Shown one piece after another: positions 20,348-32,937 of a stretch of 64,000 nt of DNA. Under the pieces are notes generated by a model, which saw nothing but the letters and a program-made list of their open reading frames with translations, made no database searches and was not told the origin of the DNA. The stretch covers positions 50,697-114,696 of the forward strand of contig DF237211.1 of assembly GCA_000708835.1 (NCBI GenBank), given 5' to 3'. Each line of letters starts with the position of its first letter. Within the stretch, counting starts at the first letter, position 1. Both the position numbers and the translations under genes were made by a program. Source of the DNA: Klebsormidium nitens. Its lineage: Eukaryota; Plantae; Klebsormidiophyceae.

Positions 20348-23300
20348 ATGGCGCCTTCTGCAGGTCGCAATCTGCTCCTTATAGGAGCGCTATTTGTGCT
20401 CTTCGTTGGTGCCAATGCACAGAACGGGACTACAATTCAAATCAACGTAAGGTCTTGCATGGATCTTTGTTTAGTTATGCAGCTTCGTAGTGCCGCATTG
20501 CTCTGTGTGGTACACTTTTGAAGGTCCGAGCTCCCGCAATGCATTGTCTTATAAAAGGTGCTTTTCCAAATGGTCCTTGACAAAAGTGTTTGTTCAATTT
20601 TGCAATTCGTGTTGCATTCCAATTGTAGAGGTGCGAAAGCTGACTTTATGATTTCAAATGAAGTGCTGGTCAATGATCATCTTCCTTACCTGCAGCAAGT
20701 GGGCTTTAGACTGTCTTTTCTTAGCTTGGAGACTGGGCAAGTGGTTTCTACTGCGTCGTCAGGAAGGGCGCTCTCCAATCTTTGGAAGCAATACATGAGC
20801 TGCTGTTGTATAAAAGGTTCTTGATTGGTGGATCTTTTCAAACTACCTGTGAAATAAAGGAGTTGTCACTACAGTTGCAGAACTGGATACCTTCTTTTGA
20901 CCAGTGGTGAGATTCACTGAAGTTGACCTCCTCTTTGCTCCCAGTTCATCGCCGCCAATGGGCCGGTGGTTGTTGGAAAGTTCCTCCAGTTCACGACCCT
21001 TCTCCGAAACAGTGGACCGAGCAGCTACAATGGTTCCAATGGTACCAATGTAACTGTGGTGTTCAATGGGACGCTGAGCGTCACCTGCTCTGGTAAGGGT
21101 TTAAGTGACAATTCTCCTATGCTTCTTGATCTTTCCAACTTCCAGACTGTGAAACCAGAGATCTCTTGGATGCTCCACAAAGGTTCTCCGCAGATGCTCA
21201 TAAAAGGTGGCACCTTTAGCATTCGGCTTTCTCGCCATCAGTGCCCCTAGCTAAGATGAGATCTGTGCTTCTTGACACTGGCATTGAGAGAAAGTTGATC
21301 AGGGGCAGTCCCCTGATGCTGTCATCAAGACACTCCTTCTGGCCCACCTTCCAAATTGCTGGAGCACTGCCCAAGATTGGAGCAGCAATTACTGGTTGTC
21401 TACCTTCATTCGCATCTTTTCGGGACTTGCATTTGTCACTTCCCCCCCAATTGGAGTTGCGGAAGCCAAGGGTCTTTGTTTTCTGTCTGAATGGAGACGA
21501 CTGCATCATCGGTCAATTGTTTAAGGAGTTTGGTCCAGAAAGTATGTCTGGCCAGGTGCGTATATGCTTGGCGAGACAACACAGAGAGCGTTTTTGTTCA
21601 GACATGCATGCTTCAAGCATCACAATCTCCTCTTGTTCGTTCCTAACGCCCCACGTTGCTCCTTCTTGAGCCAACGCATCATACAAGTTCTGCCTTTCTT
21701 TCTGGAATTGCAGATGCCTACCTTTTGAACGTCAACTCCACCCTCGCCAGCCCTGGGTGCAATGAGCAGATCACCATCCCACCCTATGCGGTTGGCAGCC
21801 AGCTCAATGAAAGCTACCCTGGTTGTGACGTCAACCCTCAGGGCCTGATTGACCTAAACACCACCACCGGCCCCGTGCGATACCCGACATCGGTTACTGC
21901 TGATGGCCATACTGCCACCTGGACGGTAAGGCATCTCCAGTTGCAGACACTGATCAATGAGCTATCTTTTTTACTGGTCTGCATTGATGTTTAGACCCGG
22001 CAAATTGGGATCAGAAGCTTCAATCGCCTGTCGTCATTTGGAACTCACCTGTCCAACGGTTTCACCTTCTTGATTTTGCAGCAGGATTGTCAATGCTAGC
22101 ACCTAACAAGGAGCGAAAGAGTGCCTCCCATGACTGGAATCCAGCATCTTTTCTCTGTAAATGAACCTCCCAGTCTGTCTTTCCTTCCTTTCTGCTTTTG
22201 TTCAGGTTCTTGGACAAATTTTGATTTGAAAGGAACATGATCGCACAGACACCTCCACTATGTTCGCTGCGCAATTCTGGGTTCAGGACCTCGCCCTTTT
22301 TGACGAATGGAACACAAAGGAAAAATTCATCCGACCCTATTTATCTGTTCTGCTCGCAGAATGTCATCCTCGCTCCTGGCGTCACCACGGCTCTTCCCGT
22401 GGTTGGCTTCATCCAATACCAGCAGCCCATCCTGTGCCTGGCCACCTTTGGACCGTCTGACCCGACAGGAGCCAACTCCACCATTCTCAATGCGCCGAGC
22501 GGCGTGAACGGGACTTCGTCAAACACCCTCCAGAAGGGCACCATCTTCAACAGCATCCTGCAGCCGGTGAGGTGTTTTGACAGCTGTTACTGCCCTGTTT
22601 GTGTGCAAGTGATGTACAGTCTATCAGAAACAGTCTGCCCTACATTGTCGCGTCCTGAGGACTGAACGTCAGAGTGCTGGGGAGGGGCTTGCATGCAATG
22701 AAGTTAGGTGCTTTCATTTGCGACTTGGAACGAAACGACACTTGGTTCTGGCACGATTTGCAGCATGCAACCTAAACTTGTTCAAAATCCGAACCAAAGA
22801 TGTCGAGGATCCAGCAGGTTTCTGCTGGTGAGACTGTGATTACTGGCATATGGTAGCTTCCTTCCGCGGGTGCATCACACTGTACTGTGTCATGTAGAAG
22901 GCTCTCTCCATTGTCTTCAAATTCTTGTATGTAACGGCATGCTCCGTTCTTGTTGCAGCCCAACCCGCCTCCGAACCCCCCTCCCCCGAACCCTCCTCCG
23001 CAGAACCCTCCCCCTGCAAACCCCCCACCTGCNNNNNNNNNNNNNNNNNNNNNNNNNNNNNNNNNNNNNNNNNNNNNNNNNNNNNNNNNNNNNNNNNNNN
23101 NNNNNNNNNNNNNNNNNNNNNNNNNNNNNNNNNNNNNNNNNNNNNNNNNNNNNNNNNNNNNNNNNNNNNNNNNNNNNNNNNNNNNNNNNNNNNNNNNNNN
23201 NNNNNNNNNNNNNNNNNNNNNNNNNNNNNNNNNNNNNNNNNNNNNNNNNNNNNNNNNNNNNNNNNNNNNNNNNNNNNNNNNNNNNNNNNNNNNNNNNNNN

Positions 23301-23659
23301 NNNNNNNNNNNNNNNNNNNNNNNNNNNNNNNNNNNNNNNNNNNNNNNNNNCCCCCTCCCAGCCCAATCCCGCCACCCGGCCAAACCCTCCCCCCGGCTAA
23401 CCCCCCCCCCGGCCAACCCCCCCTCCCGGCCCAATCCCCCCTCCGGCCAATCCCCCTCCCGAAAACCCGCCCCCCCTCAAGCCCTCCTCCCGCAAACCCC
23501 CCTCCCGCAGTTACAGCTGGAAACGCAACCGCTGCCCCTGGGCCGAAGGCGGCTCCGGCGCCTGCGCCGACAACCGCTCCCGAACCTCCGCCTTCGCCTA
23601 CTCCTACTCCCACTCCTTCTCCTACCACTGCACCGTCGTTCCCACCTCCTTCCGCTTAG
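20348..23659 (+). CDS. Secreted chimeric proline-rich glycoprotein (signal peptide, Cys-containing beta-rich domain, NPPP-repeat/AGP-like tail); exons 20348-20446, 20945-21092, 21714-21925, 22360-22566, 22959-23659
   Basis: Signal peptide MAPSAGRNLLLIGALFVLFVGANA. Many N-x-S/T sequons. Exon phases are compatible. Last exon reads PNPPPNPPPPNPPPQNPPPANPPP...APAPAPTTAPEPPPSPTPTPTPSP and is interrupted by an N gap. Confidence 0.7.
23033..23350. other. Assembly gap (N run) inside the proline-repeat exon
   Basis: A run of n from 23033 to 23350, flanked by C-rich Pro codons. Confidence 1.
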
Positions 23660-23721
23660 TTCCTGACACACGGGTGAGTGCCGAGATTTTGTCAGGGATG
23701 GACTTGGCGGCATGGTACTTG

Positions 23722-25306: not shown

Positions 25307-28300
25307 TCAACCCACAAGGCTTGGAAGAGGCTTGAGGTCCGGCAGCCGGAACACTTCTGCCGCGGATGTATCAAAGATGGACTTCTCGCGATAGTGATCA
25401 AGATACAACCTGCTATTTGTCAAGATTCCCTCGCCCGCTTTCCATCCTTGGCACCAGCTTTTGAACGCTCCGAACTCCCCCCCAGCGCTACACTCCCTGC
25501 CGTCCCCGTCGACACCCCCAATCCGAACCAAACCTGACGCCGCCGCCATGTCCTTCTTGGTTCGCACCCCCCCAGGCGCGGGGCCTCCCTGCCTCGACTT
25601 TTGCCACGTGGCCCGCGCAAAATCCACCATTTGGATCCAGAAGTAGTTGATGGTCATGTGGAACCCGCTTCCTTCGTGCCGTCTCAGCTCGGTTAGTATT
25701 TTCTCCTTTCCCTGAGCCCTTCCCAGCGTAATCAGGTAGAGGAAGATCACCCGGATCAGGCACTCGTGGTTCCACCGGTCGAGCTGCCCGCCCTCGAAGC
25801 GCGCCAAGAAGTCGGCGTCGTTTTCCGAGGCGTGAACGGCTGACGAGAGGAGAGCACGGGTGAGCGAGGGGAGCGGTTTTACGGTGTGACTCTCACTGCT
25901 TCAACCGAGAAAGGTACCGACAACACGCAGGAAGCCGTCACTACTCCGAGCACAATCGAGGTTTCCAATCCGCAAGCAAGGGGCACAAGAGCTGCGGTCT
26001 TGATACCGGAACCGGAGATTGAAGCGAACAGAAAGAATTGCGCAAGCACGGCTTGCACAAGGCAGCCAGTTCGTCGAACAGCGGTCCAGCCGCAACGTTG
26101 GCTCTGAACTCGAGCTCCAAAAGTAACCAGCCGTGTCATAAAAGCTTTTACAGGACTGCAAAATCCGAATCAGCCTCAGCCCTGGCAGCAAAAAGGAAAA
26201 GGCGATCCGAACACTATGTAAATTGTCAAAGCCTGCTTGCAGTGCATACCGGATCCAGTTGAACTGCTCTCCGCTGCCGGCGAGATCCCGGCCGTCTTTT
26301 CCAACGCGCTCGAGCGCTCGCGCACGTCCGACACCAGGCTGGGCAGGGGCGCCTTGTCCGGCAGCACGACGGACGTCCGCGCCTCGGGCGTGTGCAGCAT
26401 CAGCTTCTTGGAGTAGTAGGCCAAAAACATGCCGCCGTTGGCGAGCTGCAGCAACCGCGCAGGGTTTTAAAACCTTTGTGGGTGGAGATCTGAACTTTGC
26501 GGCCGGACGACACTCTAGGCCTCGCCTTCTGCTCCTCATTTGGAGCTTTCCTTCGCCACGGCTGTGCCTGAATACAAGCCCAGGATTGATCTAGCGCGCA
26601 GGTTTATGCAAAGTGGCAGGCTTAGCGACTACTGCCAAGGTTGATTACGCGAACAATGCGCAAAGGGGTCAAGTTGAAACCGTTCAGACCGTCAAACGTG
26701 TCGGCACAGAACGGCCTCAGAGATAAGATTTTCGTTGATCCAGTGGAGCCACCAAATTCAAGGGCGGGCGTCCCACCTGCGGGTTGAGCAGGAGGAAGGT
26801 CTTGAAGCCGCCGTCGGGGTTGCTGGTGGTCGCGAGCGCGTAGTGCACCATATGCACCCAGAAGTACGTCATCGTCTCGTGGAACGTCGTGCCGCGCGCG
26901 CGTTTCGTCCTCGGGCTGTTGGCAATGAACGCCCTGCGCTCGGGAGGGGGTCTACCGTGAACGTCTACAATCTGGGAGTGAGAAGAGAACGGACTGCAGA
27001 TCGCGCTTATGTCAGGTTCGGTTGACAAGTTTGTGAGGCCAGGATTTGGATGGGTTTGCAGAGCAGGCCCCAGCGCTTGTTGGAATTAGTTGTAGCAAGC
27101 GTCTCGAAGGGTAAGGTGCGCAAGGGGCGGGTTCGCTATCCGCTTTCGATCTGCGGGTCCGAGAGCATCGTCAGACAGCCCCCGAAAATGCTCTGATTAA
27201 GCCTCGCCTTACTGACCTTGGCAGGGGTAAAGGACTACGACATCTAGAATCCAATTTACCGAAAAACCGACCGCCCGAAGTTCGACGGCCAGGGATGCAA
27301 GCCTGAAGCAAATGAAAGCATGGCCCGGATGCTCTGGCCGTGGGGGGCAACTTTCGTAACTACTGTTTGAAGAGGTAAAGGGCAGCGGAAGAGGTCAAGA
27401 CGGAGCTGCAATCACAATGACTTCGACCGGATGAGCGCTAAACGCAAAGCACAAACTCTCGTCAGCACTCCCGGGAGTAAACAGAAGATGATGCTTAGAG
27501 AAACCCAGTCGAGCGGCGGAACCTACTTGATCCCCTCGAAAATGAGCCGCATGCCCTCTCTCCGGCCCTCTCTGGTTAAGTACAGCCACGCGATGCGCAG
27601 ATGGGTCCGGTGGTCCCAAGAGTCTAGAGTGTAGGTTCTGCAGCAAGGAAACGCAAGCGTTTACTCGTGCGTACGACTTTCGTCGCGGTGAGTTGATCAA
27701 ATTACCGTGCCAAGTGTCAGACCGGAACGCGTGACCTGGACGGAAAGAGGGTGCGGGGAGAGACGATGTCTGTTCTACGAAACCGCTGTTGCCCACGAAA
27801 GACTTTGAGCTGAGAGTCCGCCCGTGGTGCAGACACTTCTGAAATGTCGCGGGTTAGCAAGAGTTGCCTGATATTCCGAAAGACGTTGCAAACGCAGTCA
27901 GGCCTCCTCAGGGCGAAAGCGCCGCTACACTACGCCGTGGCAATCGACTCACTGACATGATCGGTGACGCTACTCTCAAATTCGATGCTTCCTCGTTATC
28001 GAACCATGCAACTTTCCGGAGGCGAGAGCTTGCCTGCCAAGCAATGCCCTGTTCCGGGTTCCCTCACCTAAACTTGTCCAGAAACTCGTCGTCTGGCTCG
28101 TCCTCCTGCTCCAGCCACTGCTGCAACAGGGCCTCCATCTCCTTCTCCTTGGTGGACAGCTCCGGAGGCGCGCGCGCCGGGCCCGCTTCCTTTCGGCCCG
28201 ACCCTCTCTTGGCTCGAAGAGCATCTTGGATCCACTGAAGACCCTCGTAGAGACCCTCCCCGGTGAACGCCGAGCAGCCGATGCAGGCCCAGGGGCGGTC

Positions 28301-30000
28301 GAGGTTCTGAAGGGCAAGCTTTGAGGATACCTGTGACGTCATGATGGGGGCCGGTCAGAACTTGCCGAAAGACGGAGACCTGTGACGTCATCATTGGAGC
28401 CGGTCAGAACTGCCAGGAAAAGGACAACTGTGACATAGTCATTGTGGCCGGCGGAATAACGGAAGAGGAAGTTGCCCCCTCTCGTGGGCTGAAAGCAGTC
28501 AGTGACACATTTGAAAAGATGCTGATGGTTGGAGCGCACCTCTTCTGGAGTCATCACGTTGGGAAGGTCCTGCTTGGTTGCCCAAACTAGGAAAGGCACG
28601 TCTTGGAGAACCTCCTCACTTAACAGTCTCTGGATCTCCTCCCGCGCTTCATCGACCCTGTCTCGGTCAGACGAGTGAGCGAACCTGCGCAGCCAGACCT
28701 ACAGTGACATTTGTTATACGAAGGGCAACGCAATAGAATCGAGGATGAGAGATCAGTTTGCACCACTTTGGTCGTAGGATGAACGAGCACTGGGTCACTC
28801 CAAATGATGTTGTGACTGTAGTAGTGGAAAGTCGGGATGTGATCATGCACCGCTGCTTATCAAAGGGGATGAGCGTGACTGAGAATCTGAAGTTGCAATC
28901 ACCATAAAGGCAGGAGGGTCAGGGCTCCGGTGCTCCCATGGAACACACTTTATCAACATATCCTTTGCAGGCCCCATCAAGGCATCAAAACGCTTCAATT
29001 TGTCTTTCTCTCATTTTGGGGACTGACCTTTCCTGTCCAAAGTCTCAATCAGAGGAAGGCGGTCAAGCTAGGCCAGAGTATCAGGCTCAAAGCGGGTGAG
29101 GTTTTAAGTAGTCAGCTTCTAAGTAGTGCCAAAACCAGAGTTCACGACCATCATGCCCATATTTCCACCAGAAGATGCAACAAGTTCTCCTTGAAGATAC
29201 GGCCCCAGCTTACCATATGAGAGCCTGCGTATTTTGGAAGTAGTGCCTCCACAGAGGCCTGATCTTGTCGCAGCCCCCGACATCCCACATCGTGAAGGAC
29301 GTTCCCCCATGCGTGACGGTCTCAACGTTGAAGCCTGGAGAAAACAAGGCCGTCAGGTCAGGTGCTAGAAAAGCCCATTCGCAACAAAGGGGCCTCATAC
29401 TGACCTCAACTTACTTGTTTGAGATCTGGAAAACCAGGACTGTCTCATGTCAAGGCCTCCTGTGTTGGGGGTTGTGCTCATCAAGCAGCGTTGATTTGAA
29501 ACAAATGGTGTAAAAGATCTGAGCTAGCAAAGGCACTTGATTGAAGTCATGGCCAGAGGGCCCTCCAGACAGCTTCAATTCTTGCTGAGTAAAGTCTGGC
29601 GACTCGCGAAACAATCACACAGATATACAAGGAAAACAAGGCCGGGATTTTCTTTTTACTGCTCTCAGTCTGATCACCACCATTGCGGCAATCAAGCCGC
29701 TTGACCACCCACGACTGGAAGGCCCTCTCCAATTCATGTGCAACATTGCACATGCATGACTCAAAGCGGCATTCATGGCAAAGGTGTTCACAATTCATAC
29801 AGATGGTGTTTCAAGGCTGTTACTTTTGTGGGAGCAAGGGGCTTTGGAGACTGACCAATGGTGGGGATGGTGGTGACAATCTCCCCCAGCTTCAGCTTAT
29901 ACAGAGTGGTGGTTCTGCCTGCTGCGTCCAGGCCCAACAAAAGAACCCGCACTTCTGGCCGTCCATAGATCTTCTCAATCATCCGACCAATGATGGACAT
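25307..30000 (-). CDS. Atypical ARF-family GTPase fused to two tandem copies of an uncharacterised W(D/N)H...FH(E/M)T..YFW...PD..PLP domain; join(30000-29856,29334-29214,28684-28540,28330-28068,27637-27527,26933-26777,26445-26250,25839-25307)
   Basis: All eight GT-AG exons join in frame. ARF part: [81 protein letters not shown]. Repeat 1: [38 protein letters not shown]. Repeat 2: [36 protein letters not shown]. Confidence 0.85.
28329..28456 (-). repeat. Three ~49-bp tandem copies of an intron 3' end (ARF-fusion gene)
   Basis: (a/c)ctgtgacgtcat....g.ccggtcagaact at 28329 and 28378, and a degenerate copy at 28426. Each supplies a minus-strand cacag acceptor. Confidence 0.8.
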
Positions 30001-30994: not shown

Positions 30995-32937
30995 ATGGTG
31001 AAACTTACCTTGATTGCCAGAGTCACGGACGGGTTGCCTCTAGCAGAGGGGCTGGATGATGGCAGGGATCAAAGGGACTTGGAAGTCTACAAGCAGCAAG
31101 CAAAGCAGCTTTTCAAGAAGATGTCGCAAGGGCCGCCGCCTGCATCCAGAATGTCGTACGAGTCGGGACCTTACGTTTTCCAGTATCCTCATGATCAGCT
31201 TTAGTTGCTCTGTCTGCATGCTGAAAGAGTTCACGTTTCCAATGACTTCCGGATGTTTTGAGCATAGATTATTTTCTCTGTTCATCTGTGACAATCCTTG
31301 GAATGCTACTGCAGGCAAGGGGTTGAAATGACGCCACTGCAGGCAAGGGGTTGAAATGATGCCTAAGTTGAGGACTTGCTGTTCACTTTACTGCTAAAGT
31401 CTGGCACCTTGACATCTCAATTCTGTCAGCTACATCATCGAAGGCGGAGTATGTTACCTGACCGTGTGTGAAAAGGCCTACCCCAAGAAGCTCGCATATC
31501 AGTATCTCGAGGACCTTCAAAAGGAGTTTGAGAAGGTTAACCGAGAACAGATTGAGACGGTGGCAAGGCCTTATGCCTTCATCAAATTTGGTAAGTCCCT
31601 TTCAGGATCTCGATGGTGCCGGTGGGACAGCAGTATACGGTTCGTATGTATTGCCCATCCCTCGGAAACATTACAATCAATATCGTCGGTTATCAATCGC
31701 TCTCATTGTTTGATTTTGCGTCGGAAGTCTCCCTTTGCATATGTAGTGTCTGGCTCAACAGTGAGGGTCTTCTTCCCAAAGCTGCAGAGGAGTATACCCA
31801 GGTTTTTGCTCGATCGAAGCCCCACAAGCTTCTGCTTTCCGTCAGCAATTGCTAACCGGCAGTCACCAGACAAGCAATGCTGTCATTTTGGTCAAGGAAA
31901 CCCGACAGATTGATGTTGGTGTCTGCACCACAAGATATCAATTCTGCTTTTGACAAACTCTCTTGATGCAGACACGTTCATACAAAAAACAAAGAAGTTA
32001 TATCAGGACACAAAGACGCAGCGGAACTTGAACAAGCTGCAAGACGATCTTCACGAAGTCCAACAGATTATGACTCGGAACATTCAGGAAGTGTTGGGGA
32101 TGGGAGACAGGCTCGACAGTAGGTTCATTTGCCCTTGCTGACTTTGTATCATCATTTTCGGTGTCTTTCACGCAGAGTCTGAAGAAGTCCATGTCTTAGC
32201 AGAATTTTGCGAGCATCACTTCTGCAGAGAGCTTGACGTACAGCCAAACTGCATCTGTAAATTCGCTTGCAGAGCTCACTGTTATTCCAACATGGAAAGA
32301 TCCTTACAAGCGATCATTTGGAATGCAGAGTACCTGAATCTTTTGACTGCTAATCTGTTGATTGCGTTGTTTAGGTTAGTCTTCTTCTTTTGACGCTGAG
32401 GAGGTTGAAAGCCTCTCACGTTTGTAAGACACATAAGGCATCAAAATGCTCAGTTGAGATTTATATTTGTGCGCCATGGGGGCGTAGAATCTCTGGTGCG
32501 TCCTGGCTTCGGAGAAGGGGAAAGTTTGATCTGTGTTCAGACCCTGTCAGTCCACTCATCAAAGGTTGAGACCTTTCAGCCTGCCTTTAATGCTGGTCAC
32601 TGCTGCTGTTATGCAGATGTCACACGGATGTCCAACACCCTGACATCCGAGTCGCGCATCTATGCCAAGAAAGCGGAGGATCTTAGTCGACAGGTAAGTT
32701 GAGTTCTGTGATTATTCTTCTTTAGCATCGACTCTTCATACGACTCTTCATAAGCTGCCTCATGCTCTCATGTCATTCTTTGCCCCTTTTGGCTCTCGCA
32801 TATGCTTCCTTATCCTCTCAATCGCCAACGAACCGATGTGTTTGCTGCAGGCGTTGATAAGGAAATGGGCGCCGTATGTGATCATCGTAGGAACTGTTCT
32901 GATTCTGACGTACCTCAAAAGCTTTTGGTTTCGGTAG
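30995..32937 (+). CDS. SEC22: SEC22 longin R-SNARE
   Basis: MVKLTLIARVTDGLPLAEGLDDGRD..., YIIEGGVCYLTVCEKAYPKKLAYQYLEDLQKEF, RPYAFIKFDTFIQKTKKLYQDTKTQRNLNKLQDDLHEVQQIMTRNIQEVLGMGDRLD and a C-terminal TM (KWAPYVIIVGTVLILTYL). Stop TAG at 32935-32937. Confidence 0.95.

Follow-up and report, generated by a model that had tools for sequence, protein, structure and literature searches.

Arl17 of Klebsormidium nitens, an Arf-like protein with a cysteine in place of the catalytic glutamine, is probably a maintained GTP-binding switch

The ARF family includes an ancient paralogue, Arl17, to which no function has been assigned; its member in Klebsormidium nitens, KniArl17, has been catalogued and listed without Gly2 (Vargová et al. 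2021, Genome Biol Evol 13:evab157; PMC8358228). Chlamydomonas reinhardtii has two members, Arl17a and Arl17b (PMC8358228). The Arl17 GTPase domains were termed 'very divergent'. In the published alignment some fungal members are degenerate to a much greater degree and have lost DxxG, so that nucleotide binding may have disappeared in part of the family. An origin by Arf1 duplication is reported with weak support for the phylogenetic position, and neither the catalytic Gln nor the P-loop nor hydrolysis is taken up in the main text (PMC8358228). Together with two other ancestral paralogues of the ARF family, Arl17 is missing from model organisms.

The gene described here lies on the minus strand of a 64,000-nt stretch of K. 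nitens DNA (the window) and is KniArl17 (kfl00262_0160). We compared the exon translations by eye, exon by exon, with the protein sequence given for KniArl17 in the supplementary material of PMC8358228 and found agreement at every junction. Consequently, both the gene and its family were already known, which an earlier sequence-only reading of this DNA had not recognised; the ARF domain belongs to a gene already on record rather than to an element of a new kind. New in the present analysis are the quantification of the family-wide Cys and of the Lys/Arg split, and the residues and dN/dS in orthologous loci.

The gene model comprises eight exons and seven introns, all GT-AG and in phase, with 1671 nt of coding sequence for 556 amino acids (Table 1), which supports the earlier reading of an intact gene with in-frame splicing. 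In the protein, an Arf1-like GTPase domain is followed by an acidic linker helix and then by two copies of a novel domain (ND). The Arf domain is encoded by exons 1-4, each of which matches the Pfam Arf family PF00025 separately (E 2e-11, 1e-14, 1e-10, and 1e-4), so that the assignment is not due to chance. The two ND copies, encoded by exons 5-7 and by exon 8, align to the ND of the relative L006, to the ND of family members and to the K. nitens rows of the published ND alignment. Relatives were found with single exons and with L006; in the later searches exon 1 was represented by positions 29896-30000, leaving out 29858-29895.

Table 1. Features of KniArl17 in the window
Feature	Position	Strand	Content
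exon 1	29856..30000	-	start codon (ATG 30000-29998), N-terminal helix MSIIG without myristoylation, P-loop GLDAAGRTT (29934-29908; Arg29, AGA 29916-29914), beginning of switch I
exon 2	29214..29334	-	interswitch and switch II (DVGGCDK 29284-29264; Cys70, TGC 29272-29270)
exon 3	28540..28684	-	(W)FAHSSDR and G4 motif WATKQD (28584-28567; Thr125, ACC 28578-28576)
tandem array	28324..28451	.	49-nt unit, 2.6 copies, in intron 3
exon 4	28068..28330	-	G5 (CSA), end of Arf domain, basic or Gly-rich linker, conserved acidic helix
exon 4 donor AG/GTGAGG	exon end 28068	-	
in-frame TGA	28064..28066	-	within donor GTGAGG, intronic; not used as a stop codon in the published protein, nor in L006, a relative with a single ORF
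exon 5	27527..27637	-	first part of ND1, W-D-H...H-L-R motif
exon 6	26777..26933	-	middle of ND1, FHETMTYFW motif
exon 7	26250..26445	-	end of ND1 (NGG...YYSKK...LPD..PLPS) and linker
exon 8	25307..25839	-	ND2 and stop codon (25309-25307)

The sequence-only reading had taken position 28068 as the lower bound of the gene, but this position is a splice donor. The donor joins in frame to the acceptor at 27638/27637, by which the GTPase domain and the ND are predicted to lie on one polypeptide. In L006 a single open reading frame runs from the acidic helix straight into ND1, two orthologous loci (L007 with L003; L001) share the gene order with KniArl17, and dozens of proteins of 400-650 aa show an Arf domain followed by ND. 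A stand-alone ARF of 225 aa ending at the TGA (28064), which was our first reading, was rejected in view of the L006 open reading frame and the published protein. The tandem array overlaps the exon 4 acceptor and thereby provides additional copies of the acceptor sequence tgacgtcacag. The stretch is contained in 20 sequencing runs from seven studies, none of which is recorded as RNA; the lower word shares among the runs (0.33-0.36) may fit exon-only contigs.

All the motifs named in the sequence-only reading, GLDAAGRTT, DVGGCDK, WATKQD, WFAHSSDR, and MSIIG, were found on the minus strand where it had placed them, WFAHSSDR straddling the junction of exons 2 and 3. Arg29 corresponds to Lys30 of ARF1, Cys70 to Gln71, and Thr125 to Asn126, and position 2 of the translation is Ser. 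Of the features of a canonical Arf (Arf1/Arf6), KniArl17 lacks Gly2, the P-loop GxxxxGK(S/T), the switch-II Gln, and NKxD. The contrast with canonical ARF holds within the same genome, where KniArfA1 begins with MG and carries GLDAAGKTT, DVGGQDK, and ANKQD.

Searching with the ND gave 1179 proteins at E<=0.001. Our family sample consists of the 91 Arl17 cluster representatives with an Arf region among the top 150 of these 1179 matches. At the Gln71 position, 69 of 77 sampled representatives have Cys, the others being Arg (4), Gly (2), Thr (1), and Ser (1), and none has Gln; a Cys where ARF1 has its catalytic Gln is a hallmark of Arl17 as a whole. The P-loop Lys position (n=68) is Lys in 46 and Arg in 20 representatives (Arg about 30%), and the first G4 residue (n=90) is Asn in 68, Thr in 15 (about 17%), and Ser in three. 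P-loop Arg and Thr for Asn in NKxD are therefore recurrent minority states. The sequence-only reading had proposed testing whether the three substitutions recur in other ARF fusions; all of them do, but not as one package, only the change from Gln to Cys being family-wide. Likewise, the absence of Gly2 is real in KniArl17 but not peculiar to it: Gly2 is present in only 3 of 65 complete N-termini of sampled representatives, and its absence is the norm for the family.

The remaining nucleotide- and Mg-contact columns are near-invariant across the sample, including the Arg subgroup. In the 20 Arg-bearing representatives the P-loop Thr is kept in 19 and replaced by Ser in one, the switch-I Thr is present in all 20, DxxG has Asp in 19 (Glu in one) and Gly in 20, and G4 has Lys in 19 and Asp in 20. 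A maximum-likelihood tree of the Arf domains (in-family only) was poorly resolved, with 8 of 61 branches starred, and on it the number of Lys/Arg changes, at least 10 versus 16-19 with shuffled labels, is indicative only.

KniArl17 is under strong purifying selection, and the earlier statement that the gene is maintained and not a pseudogene was borne out. With the method of Nei and Gojobori (NG86), 163 Arf codons gave a dN/dS of 0.13 against two orthologous loci, the same value at a dS of 0.46 and of 1.5. The exons that encode the P-loop and the switches give the lowest ratios (0.05-0.07 or below). Both loci keep the P-loop Arg and the Cys at the Gln71 position, and both are without Gly2; in place of the Asn of NKxD, one locus has Thr and the other Ala. 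For the Cys the orthologues use different synonymous codons (TGC versus TGT).

The ND model obtained by structure prediction is all-helical and folded with high confidence, and its near-invariant residues include Asp, His, Arg, and Tyr, some of them in the patterns Asp-His...His and His-x-Thr-x-Thr. In Mucoromycota the ND is fused to a flavin-reductase domain. The ND exons have no match in Pfam. With the ND model no relative was found by Foldseek against the PDB (best E 1.2, TM <=0.34) or by a wide VIA-align search (best Z 4.5). The domain also occurs alone in bacteria, and two short stand-alone ND proteins whose genomic context we looked at sit on contigs of less than 1.5 kb, too short for the context to be informative. 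For the relative P0032, prediction of a complex of ND1 with the GTPase domain, GTP and Mg being included, gave a score of 0.00, which counts neither for nor against a contact.

Judged from the sequence, KniArl17 is probably a maintained GTP-binding switch whose hydrolysis is non-canonical or absent, rather than a protein with a dead pocket or the product of a pseudogene. The pocket would still bind guanine nucleotide and Mg: it retains Gly and Thr in the P-loop, Thr in switch I, the DxxG motif, and Lys and Asp in NKxD, and in switch II the protein hardly differs from ARF1. Hydrolysis of the Gln-dependent, ArfGAP type would be absent or very slow. In ARF1 the exchange Q71L prevents hydrolysis; Walker-A Lys-to-Arg mutants commonly bind nucleotide and do not hydrolyse it. 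TKxD is the normal G4 motif in dynamin and SRP GTPases, and AKxD is that of septins. As in class II pseudoGTPases, the catalytic Gln is missing (Cys70; no Gln in the family sample). The loss of phosphate, Mg, and base residues that marks class I was not found, only the Lys being replaced, by Arg. The domain would then act as a long-lived GTP-form switch or as a nucleotide-stabilised module, presenting an Arf-like switch surface and relying for output on the ND domains at its own C-terminus, and any membrane contact would be made via the unmyristoylated amphipathic N-terminal helix. Against this explanation, no residue of P-loop NTPases is more conserved than the P-loop Lys, and an Arg in its place could weaken binding; part of the family, to judge from the degenerate fungal domains, may not bind nucleotide; and the conservation of the switch residues could be structural or due to partner binding, without nucleotide.

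For the family as a whole, we tentatively consider a more far-reaching possibility. Arl17 may be a hydrolysis-dead or unconventionally hydrolysing Arf in which the Cys of switch II plays a separate role (in redox or acyl control, or in ND contact) and which carries a built-in output domain; the all-helical fold of this domain is so far unsolved, and bacteria too have it, on its own. It would then be a GTPase with a new kind of cis effector or enzyme, dating to the last eukaryotic common ancestor.

Alternatively, Arl17 could be a working on/off switch in which catalysis has been relocated, a dedicated GAP or the ND domain in cis supplying the missing catalytic residue, much as RapGAP provides the catalytic residue for Rap1. 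Cys70 would then serve otherwise, in redox sensing, acylation or ND contact. The retention of Cys rather than of any small residue in the sampled representatives agrees with this, as do the synonymous change of its codon and the near-invariant Asp, His, Arg, and Tyr of an ND that is always linked in cis. However, neither Foldseek nor VIA-align revealed a recognisable GAP-like fold in the ND, and we consider this alternative unlikely.

The Arf domain could also be a class I pseudoGTPase that no longer binds nucleotide and serves only as a folded scaffold for the ND domains or as a module to which they dock. Three G-motif residues are off consensus together, the P-loop Lys among them, and the divergence of the Arl17 GTPase domains described by Vargová et al. 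(PMC8358228) and the loss of DxxG in some fungal members point in the same direction. Yet all the other residues that contact phosphate, Mg, and guanine hardly vary in K. nitens and the whole Arg subgroup, which is unexpected for an unused pocket, and the minimum of dN/dS falls in just the P-loop and switch exons. We therefore regard this explanation as rather improbable, and the term 'pseudo-GTPase' offered by the sequence-only reading, if it is taken to mean a dead pocket, is disfavoured; its other term, 'locked switch', may apply.

That the gene is a decaying Arf1 duplicate, or that an assembly or sequencing artefact lies behind the odd residues, is hardly credible: nothing except the unusual motifs speaks for it, and it is refuted by the intact frame with its GT-AG introns, by the dN/dS, by the presence of the same residues in relatives that were assembled independently, in the gene model of PMC8358228 and in a eukaryote-wide family, and by the presence of the stretch in runs from several studies.

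These results turn a catalogue entry into a concrete and cheap biochemical question, namely GTP binding, and any hydrolysis, by Arl17. The Cys and Arg positions are candidate residues for mutation, and the ND, a fold without a solved relative that is present alone in bacteria, offers a second handle on the function of Arl17.

Among known systems, the canonical Arf1 of the same genome, KniArfA1, is almost identical to KniArl17 in switch I, interswitch, and switch II, but is a single-domain protein with Gly2, the P-loop Lys, Gln71, and Asn126. TRIM23/ARD1 resembles Arl17 in having an Arf domain without Gly2 that is fused to other domains and substituted at the Gln position, by Lys; unlike in Arl17, its Arf domain is C-terminal, its partners are RING, B-box, and coiled coil, and it is animal-specific. 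ARL13B, with Gly at the catalytic Gln position, shares a long C-terminal extension with Arl17. Human ARL13B, ARL10, ARL15, and ARL16 are, like Arl17, members of the ARF family without the switch-II Gln and are held to be atypical or pseudoGTPases (PMC12722892), but they have other residues at the Gln position, keep the P-loop Lys, lack an ND and are not derived from Arf1. The class II pseudoGTPases Rnd1-3 and RhoH differ from Arl17 as prenylated single-domain proteins of the Rho family that keep the P-loop Lys, but they are like the mode proposed for Arl17 in that GTP is bound and not hydrolysed and regulation does not proceed by a nucleotide cycle (PMC12722892, citing Stiegler and Boggon 2020).

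Four exons on the minus strand, from 30000 to 28064, encode the Arf domain of KniArl17 in translation, and each of exons 1-4 separately matched Pfam Arf (PF00025). The motifs claimed by the sequence-only reading, i.e., the MSIIG start, the P-loop, switch II, G4 and (W)FAHSSDR, were all found in the exon translations. The canonical Arf1 of K. nitens has MG..., GLDAAGKTT, DVGGQDK and ANKQD; KniArl17 differs at all four.

The ARF domain had been placed at 28068-30000. This range covers the Arf exons but not the end of the gene, since four further exons run to 25307. An in-frame TGA (28066-28064) directly follows a good donor (AG/GTGAGG) at the exon end, 28068. This donor is joined to the acceptor 27638/27637 with the frame kept, three more GT-AG introns follow, and conserved His/Trp-rich coding sequence is present downstream of 28068. 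The eight-exon GT-AG model totals 1671 nt (556 codons and a stop), in agreement with the earlier claim of an intact gene with in-frame splicing. The fusion of the GTPase to ND, the novel domain of Arl17, is independently supported by L006, a metagenome contig with a distant relative, in which a single unbroken ORF leads from the acidic helix into the first downstream domain.

Features of KniArl17 (window positions)
Feature	Position	Strand	Remark
Exon 1	30000-29856	minus	gene model
Exon 2	29334-29214	minus	gene model
Exon 3	28684-28540	minus	gene model
Exon 4	28330-28068	minus	gene model
Exon 5	27637-27527	minus	gene model
Exon 6	26933-26777	minus	gene model
Exon 7	26445-26250	minus	gene model
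Exon 8	25839-25307	minus	gene model
ND coding part	25307-27637	minus	gene model
Arg29	29916-29914	minus	codon AGA, = ARF1 Lys30
Cys70	29272-29270	minus	codon TGC, = ARF1 Gln71
Thr125	28578-28576	minus	codon ACC, = ARF1 Asn126

Intron 3 contains a tandem array (28324-28451; 49-nt unit, 2.6 copies). As it overlaps the exon 4 acceptor, the acceptor sequence tgacgtcacag is present several times; similar repeated acceptor-like copies occur in the orthologous locus L007. In L006 the intron between ND1 and ND2 (886-950) is filled with telomere-like CCCTAA-type repeats. A run of N (assembly gap) lies at window ~22840-23660, with Pro-rich and Gly-rich repeat coding flanks on both strands.

When the first downstream domain of L006 was used as query, 1179 proteins matched at E<=0.001. 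Many were proteins of 400-650 aa with the match beginning near residue 200-250 and an Arf domain at the N-terminus; named members are from Pigoraptor, Pyxidicula, Astrephomene and an MMETSP (marine microbial eukaryote) transcriptome. [quoted passage not shown] 2021, PMC8358228). Its distribution is patchy, it is absent from model organisms and its function was called "completely unknown" (PMC8358228). The KniArl17 sequence (Klebsormidium nitens, gene kfl00262_0160) is given in the supplement of that paper, and our exon translations match it at each junction. The window is therefore from K. nitens, and both the gene and its family have already been catalogued and published. The main text of PMC8358228 nowhere discusses the catalytic glutamine, the P-loop or hydrolysis, GGC is visible in several members of its supplementary alignment, and our literature search found no later paper on this Arl17. 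In one protein from the ND search (P0105, 1583 aa) Arf and ND occur together with a Rad50/SbcC-like ATPase with zinc hook, which could be a genuine fusion or the result of merging gene models.

ND1 was modelled from the L006 residues and 77 relatives (alignment A1; modelled region L006:100-591) and is confidently predicted to be all-helical (pLDDT 95, pTM 0.89). No relative of the model was found among solved structures. Among predicted structures the shape was found in fungal Arl17 proteins, in stand-alone proteins of ~150 aa from Planctomycetota and Acidobacteriota, and, joined to a flavin-reductase domain, in a protein from Mucoromycota. The near-invariant positions of the domain comprise Trp-Asp-His, His, Arg, Gly-Arg, His-x-Thr-x-Thr-x-Phe-Trp, Tyr and Pro-Asp...Leu-Pro.

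Two orthologous loci were reached via gene-call fragments, L007 with L003 (~83-97% amino-acid identity to KniArl17 in the Arf exons) and L001 (~60-75%). Both keep the Met-Ser-Ile-Ile start, the P-loop Arg and DVGG-CDK, which in L001 is split precisely after DVGG by an additional intron (L001 3679-3738 and 4089-4145). Cys is encoded by TGC, TGC and TGT in the three loci, and G4 reads WATKQD in L007 and WVAKQD in L001. Nei-Gojobori dN/dS over 163 Arf codons (29858-29895 left out) was 0.13 at dS 0.46 and 0.13 at dS 1.5, with its lowest values in the exons of the P-loop and the switches. These values and the same residues in both orthologous loci exclude a pseudogene or an assembly error; KniArl17 is intact and maintained, as had been proposed. 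A SEC22-like longin/SNARE gene on the plus strand (window ~30995-32150) lies head to head with KniArl17, the start codons ~1 kb apart, an arrangement also present in L001 and L007.

Of the top 150 ND matches, 91 cluster representatives carried an Arf region and entered the residue census. At the Gln71 position 77 representatives had Cys (69), Arg (4), Gly (2), Thr (1) or Ser (1), and none had Gln. The P-loop Lys position was Lys in 46 and Arg in 20 of 68, the first NKxD residue Asn in 68, Thr in 15 and Ser in 3 of 90, and Gly2 was present in 3 of 65 complete N-termini. Arg, Cys and Thr were found together in four representatives besides KniArl17. The Lys/Arg distribution requires at least 10 changes on a tree of poor resolution, versus 16-19 with shuffled labels. 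Judged by census and change count, Gln to Cys is a hallmark of the Arl17 family, and Lys to Arg and Asn to Thr are recurrent minority states. Thus all three changes, whose recurrence in ARF-fusion homologues had been in question, do recur, but only Q>C is family-wide.

Dynamin, SRP GTPases and septins, which are all GTP binders, normally have Thr or Ala as the first G4 residue, and Walker-A Lys-to-Arg mutants usually bind nucleotide and do not hydrolyse it. The 20 Arg-type representatives kept the P-loop Gly (19-20) and Thr (19, one Ser), the switch-I Thr (20/20), the Asp (19, one Glu) and Gly (20/20) of DxxG, and the Lys (19/20) and Asp (20/20) of G4; switch II DKIRPLW was nearly invariant, and near-invariant pocket columns are seen family-wide too. 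An unused pocket should have relaxed, yet the other contact residues are kept, which favours a pocket that still binds GTP and Mg. Hydrolysis of the canonical ArfGAP type is unlikely, as the catalytic Gln is absent from every sampled member; ARF1 Q71L is GTP-locked. This work adds a residue census across the family and an argument, drawn from sequence conservation, for a live pocket that would not hydrolyse. Among the pseudoGTPase classes as summarised in PMC12722892, Arl17 is probably nearest to class II; like Arl17, human ARL10, ARL13A/B, ARL15 and ARL16 are without the Gln (PMC12722892).
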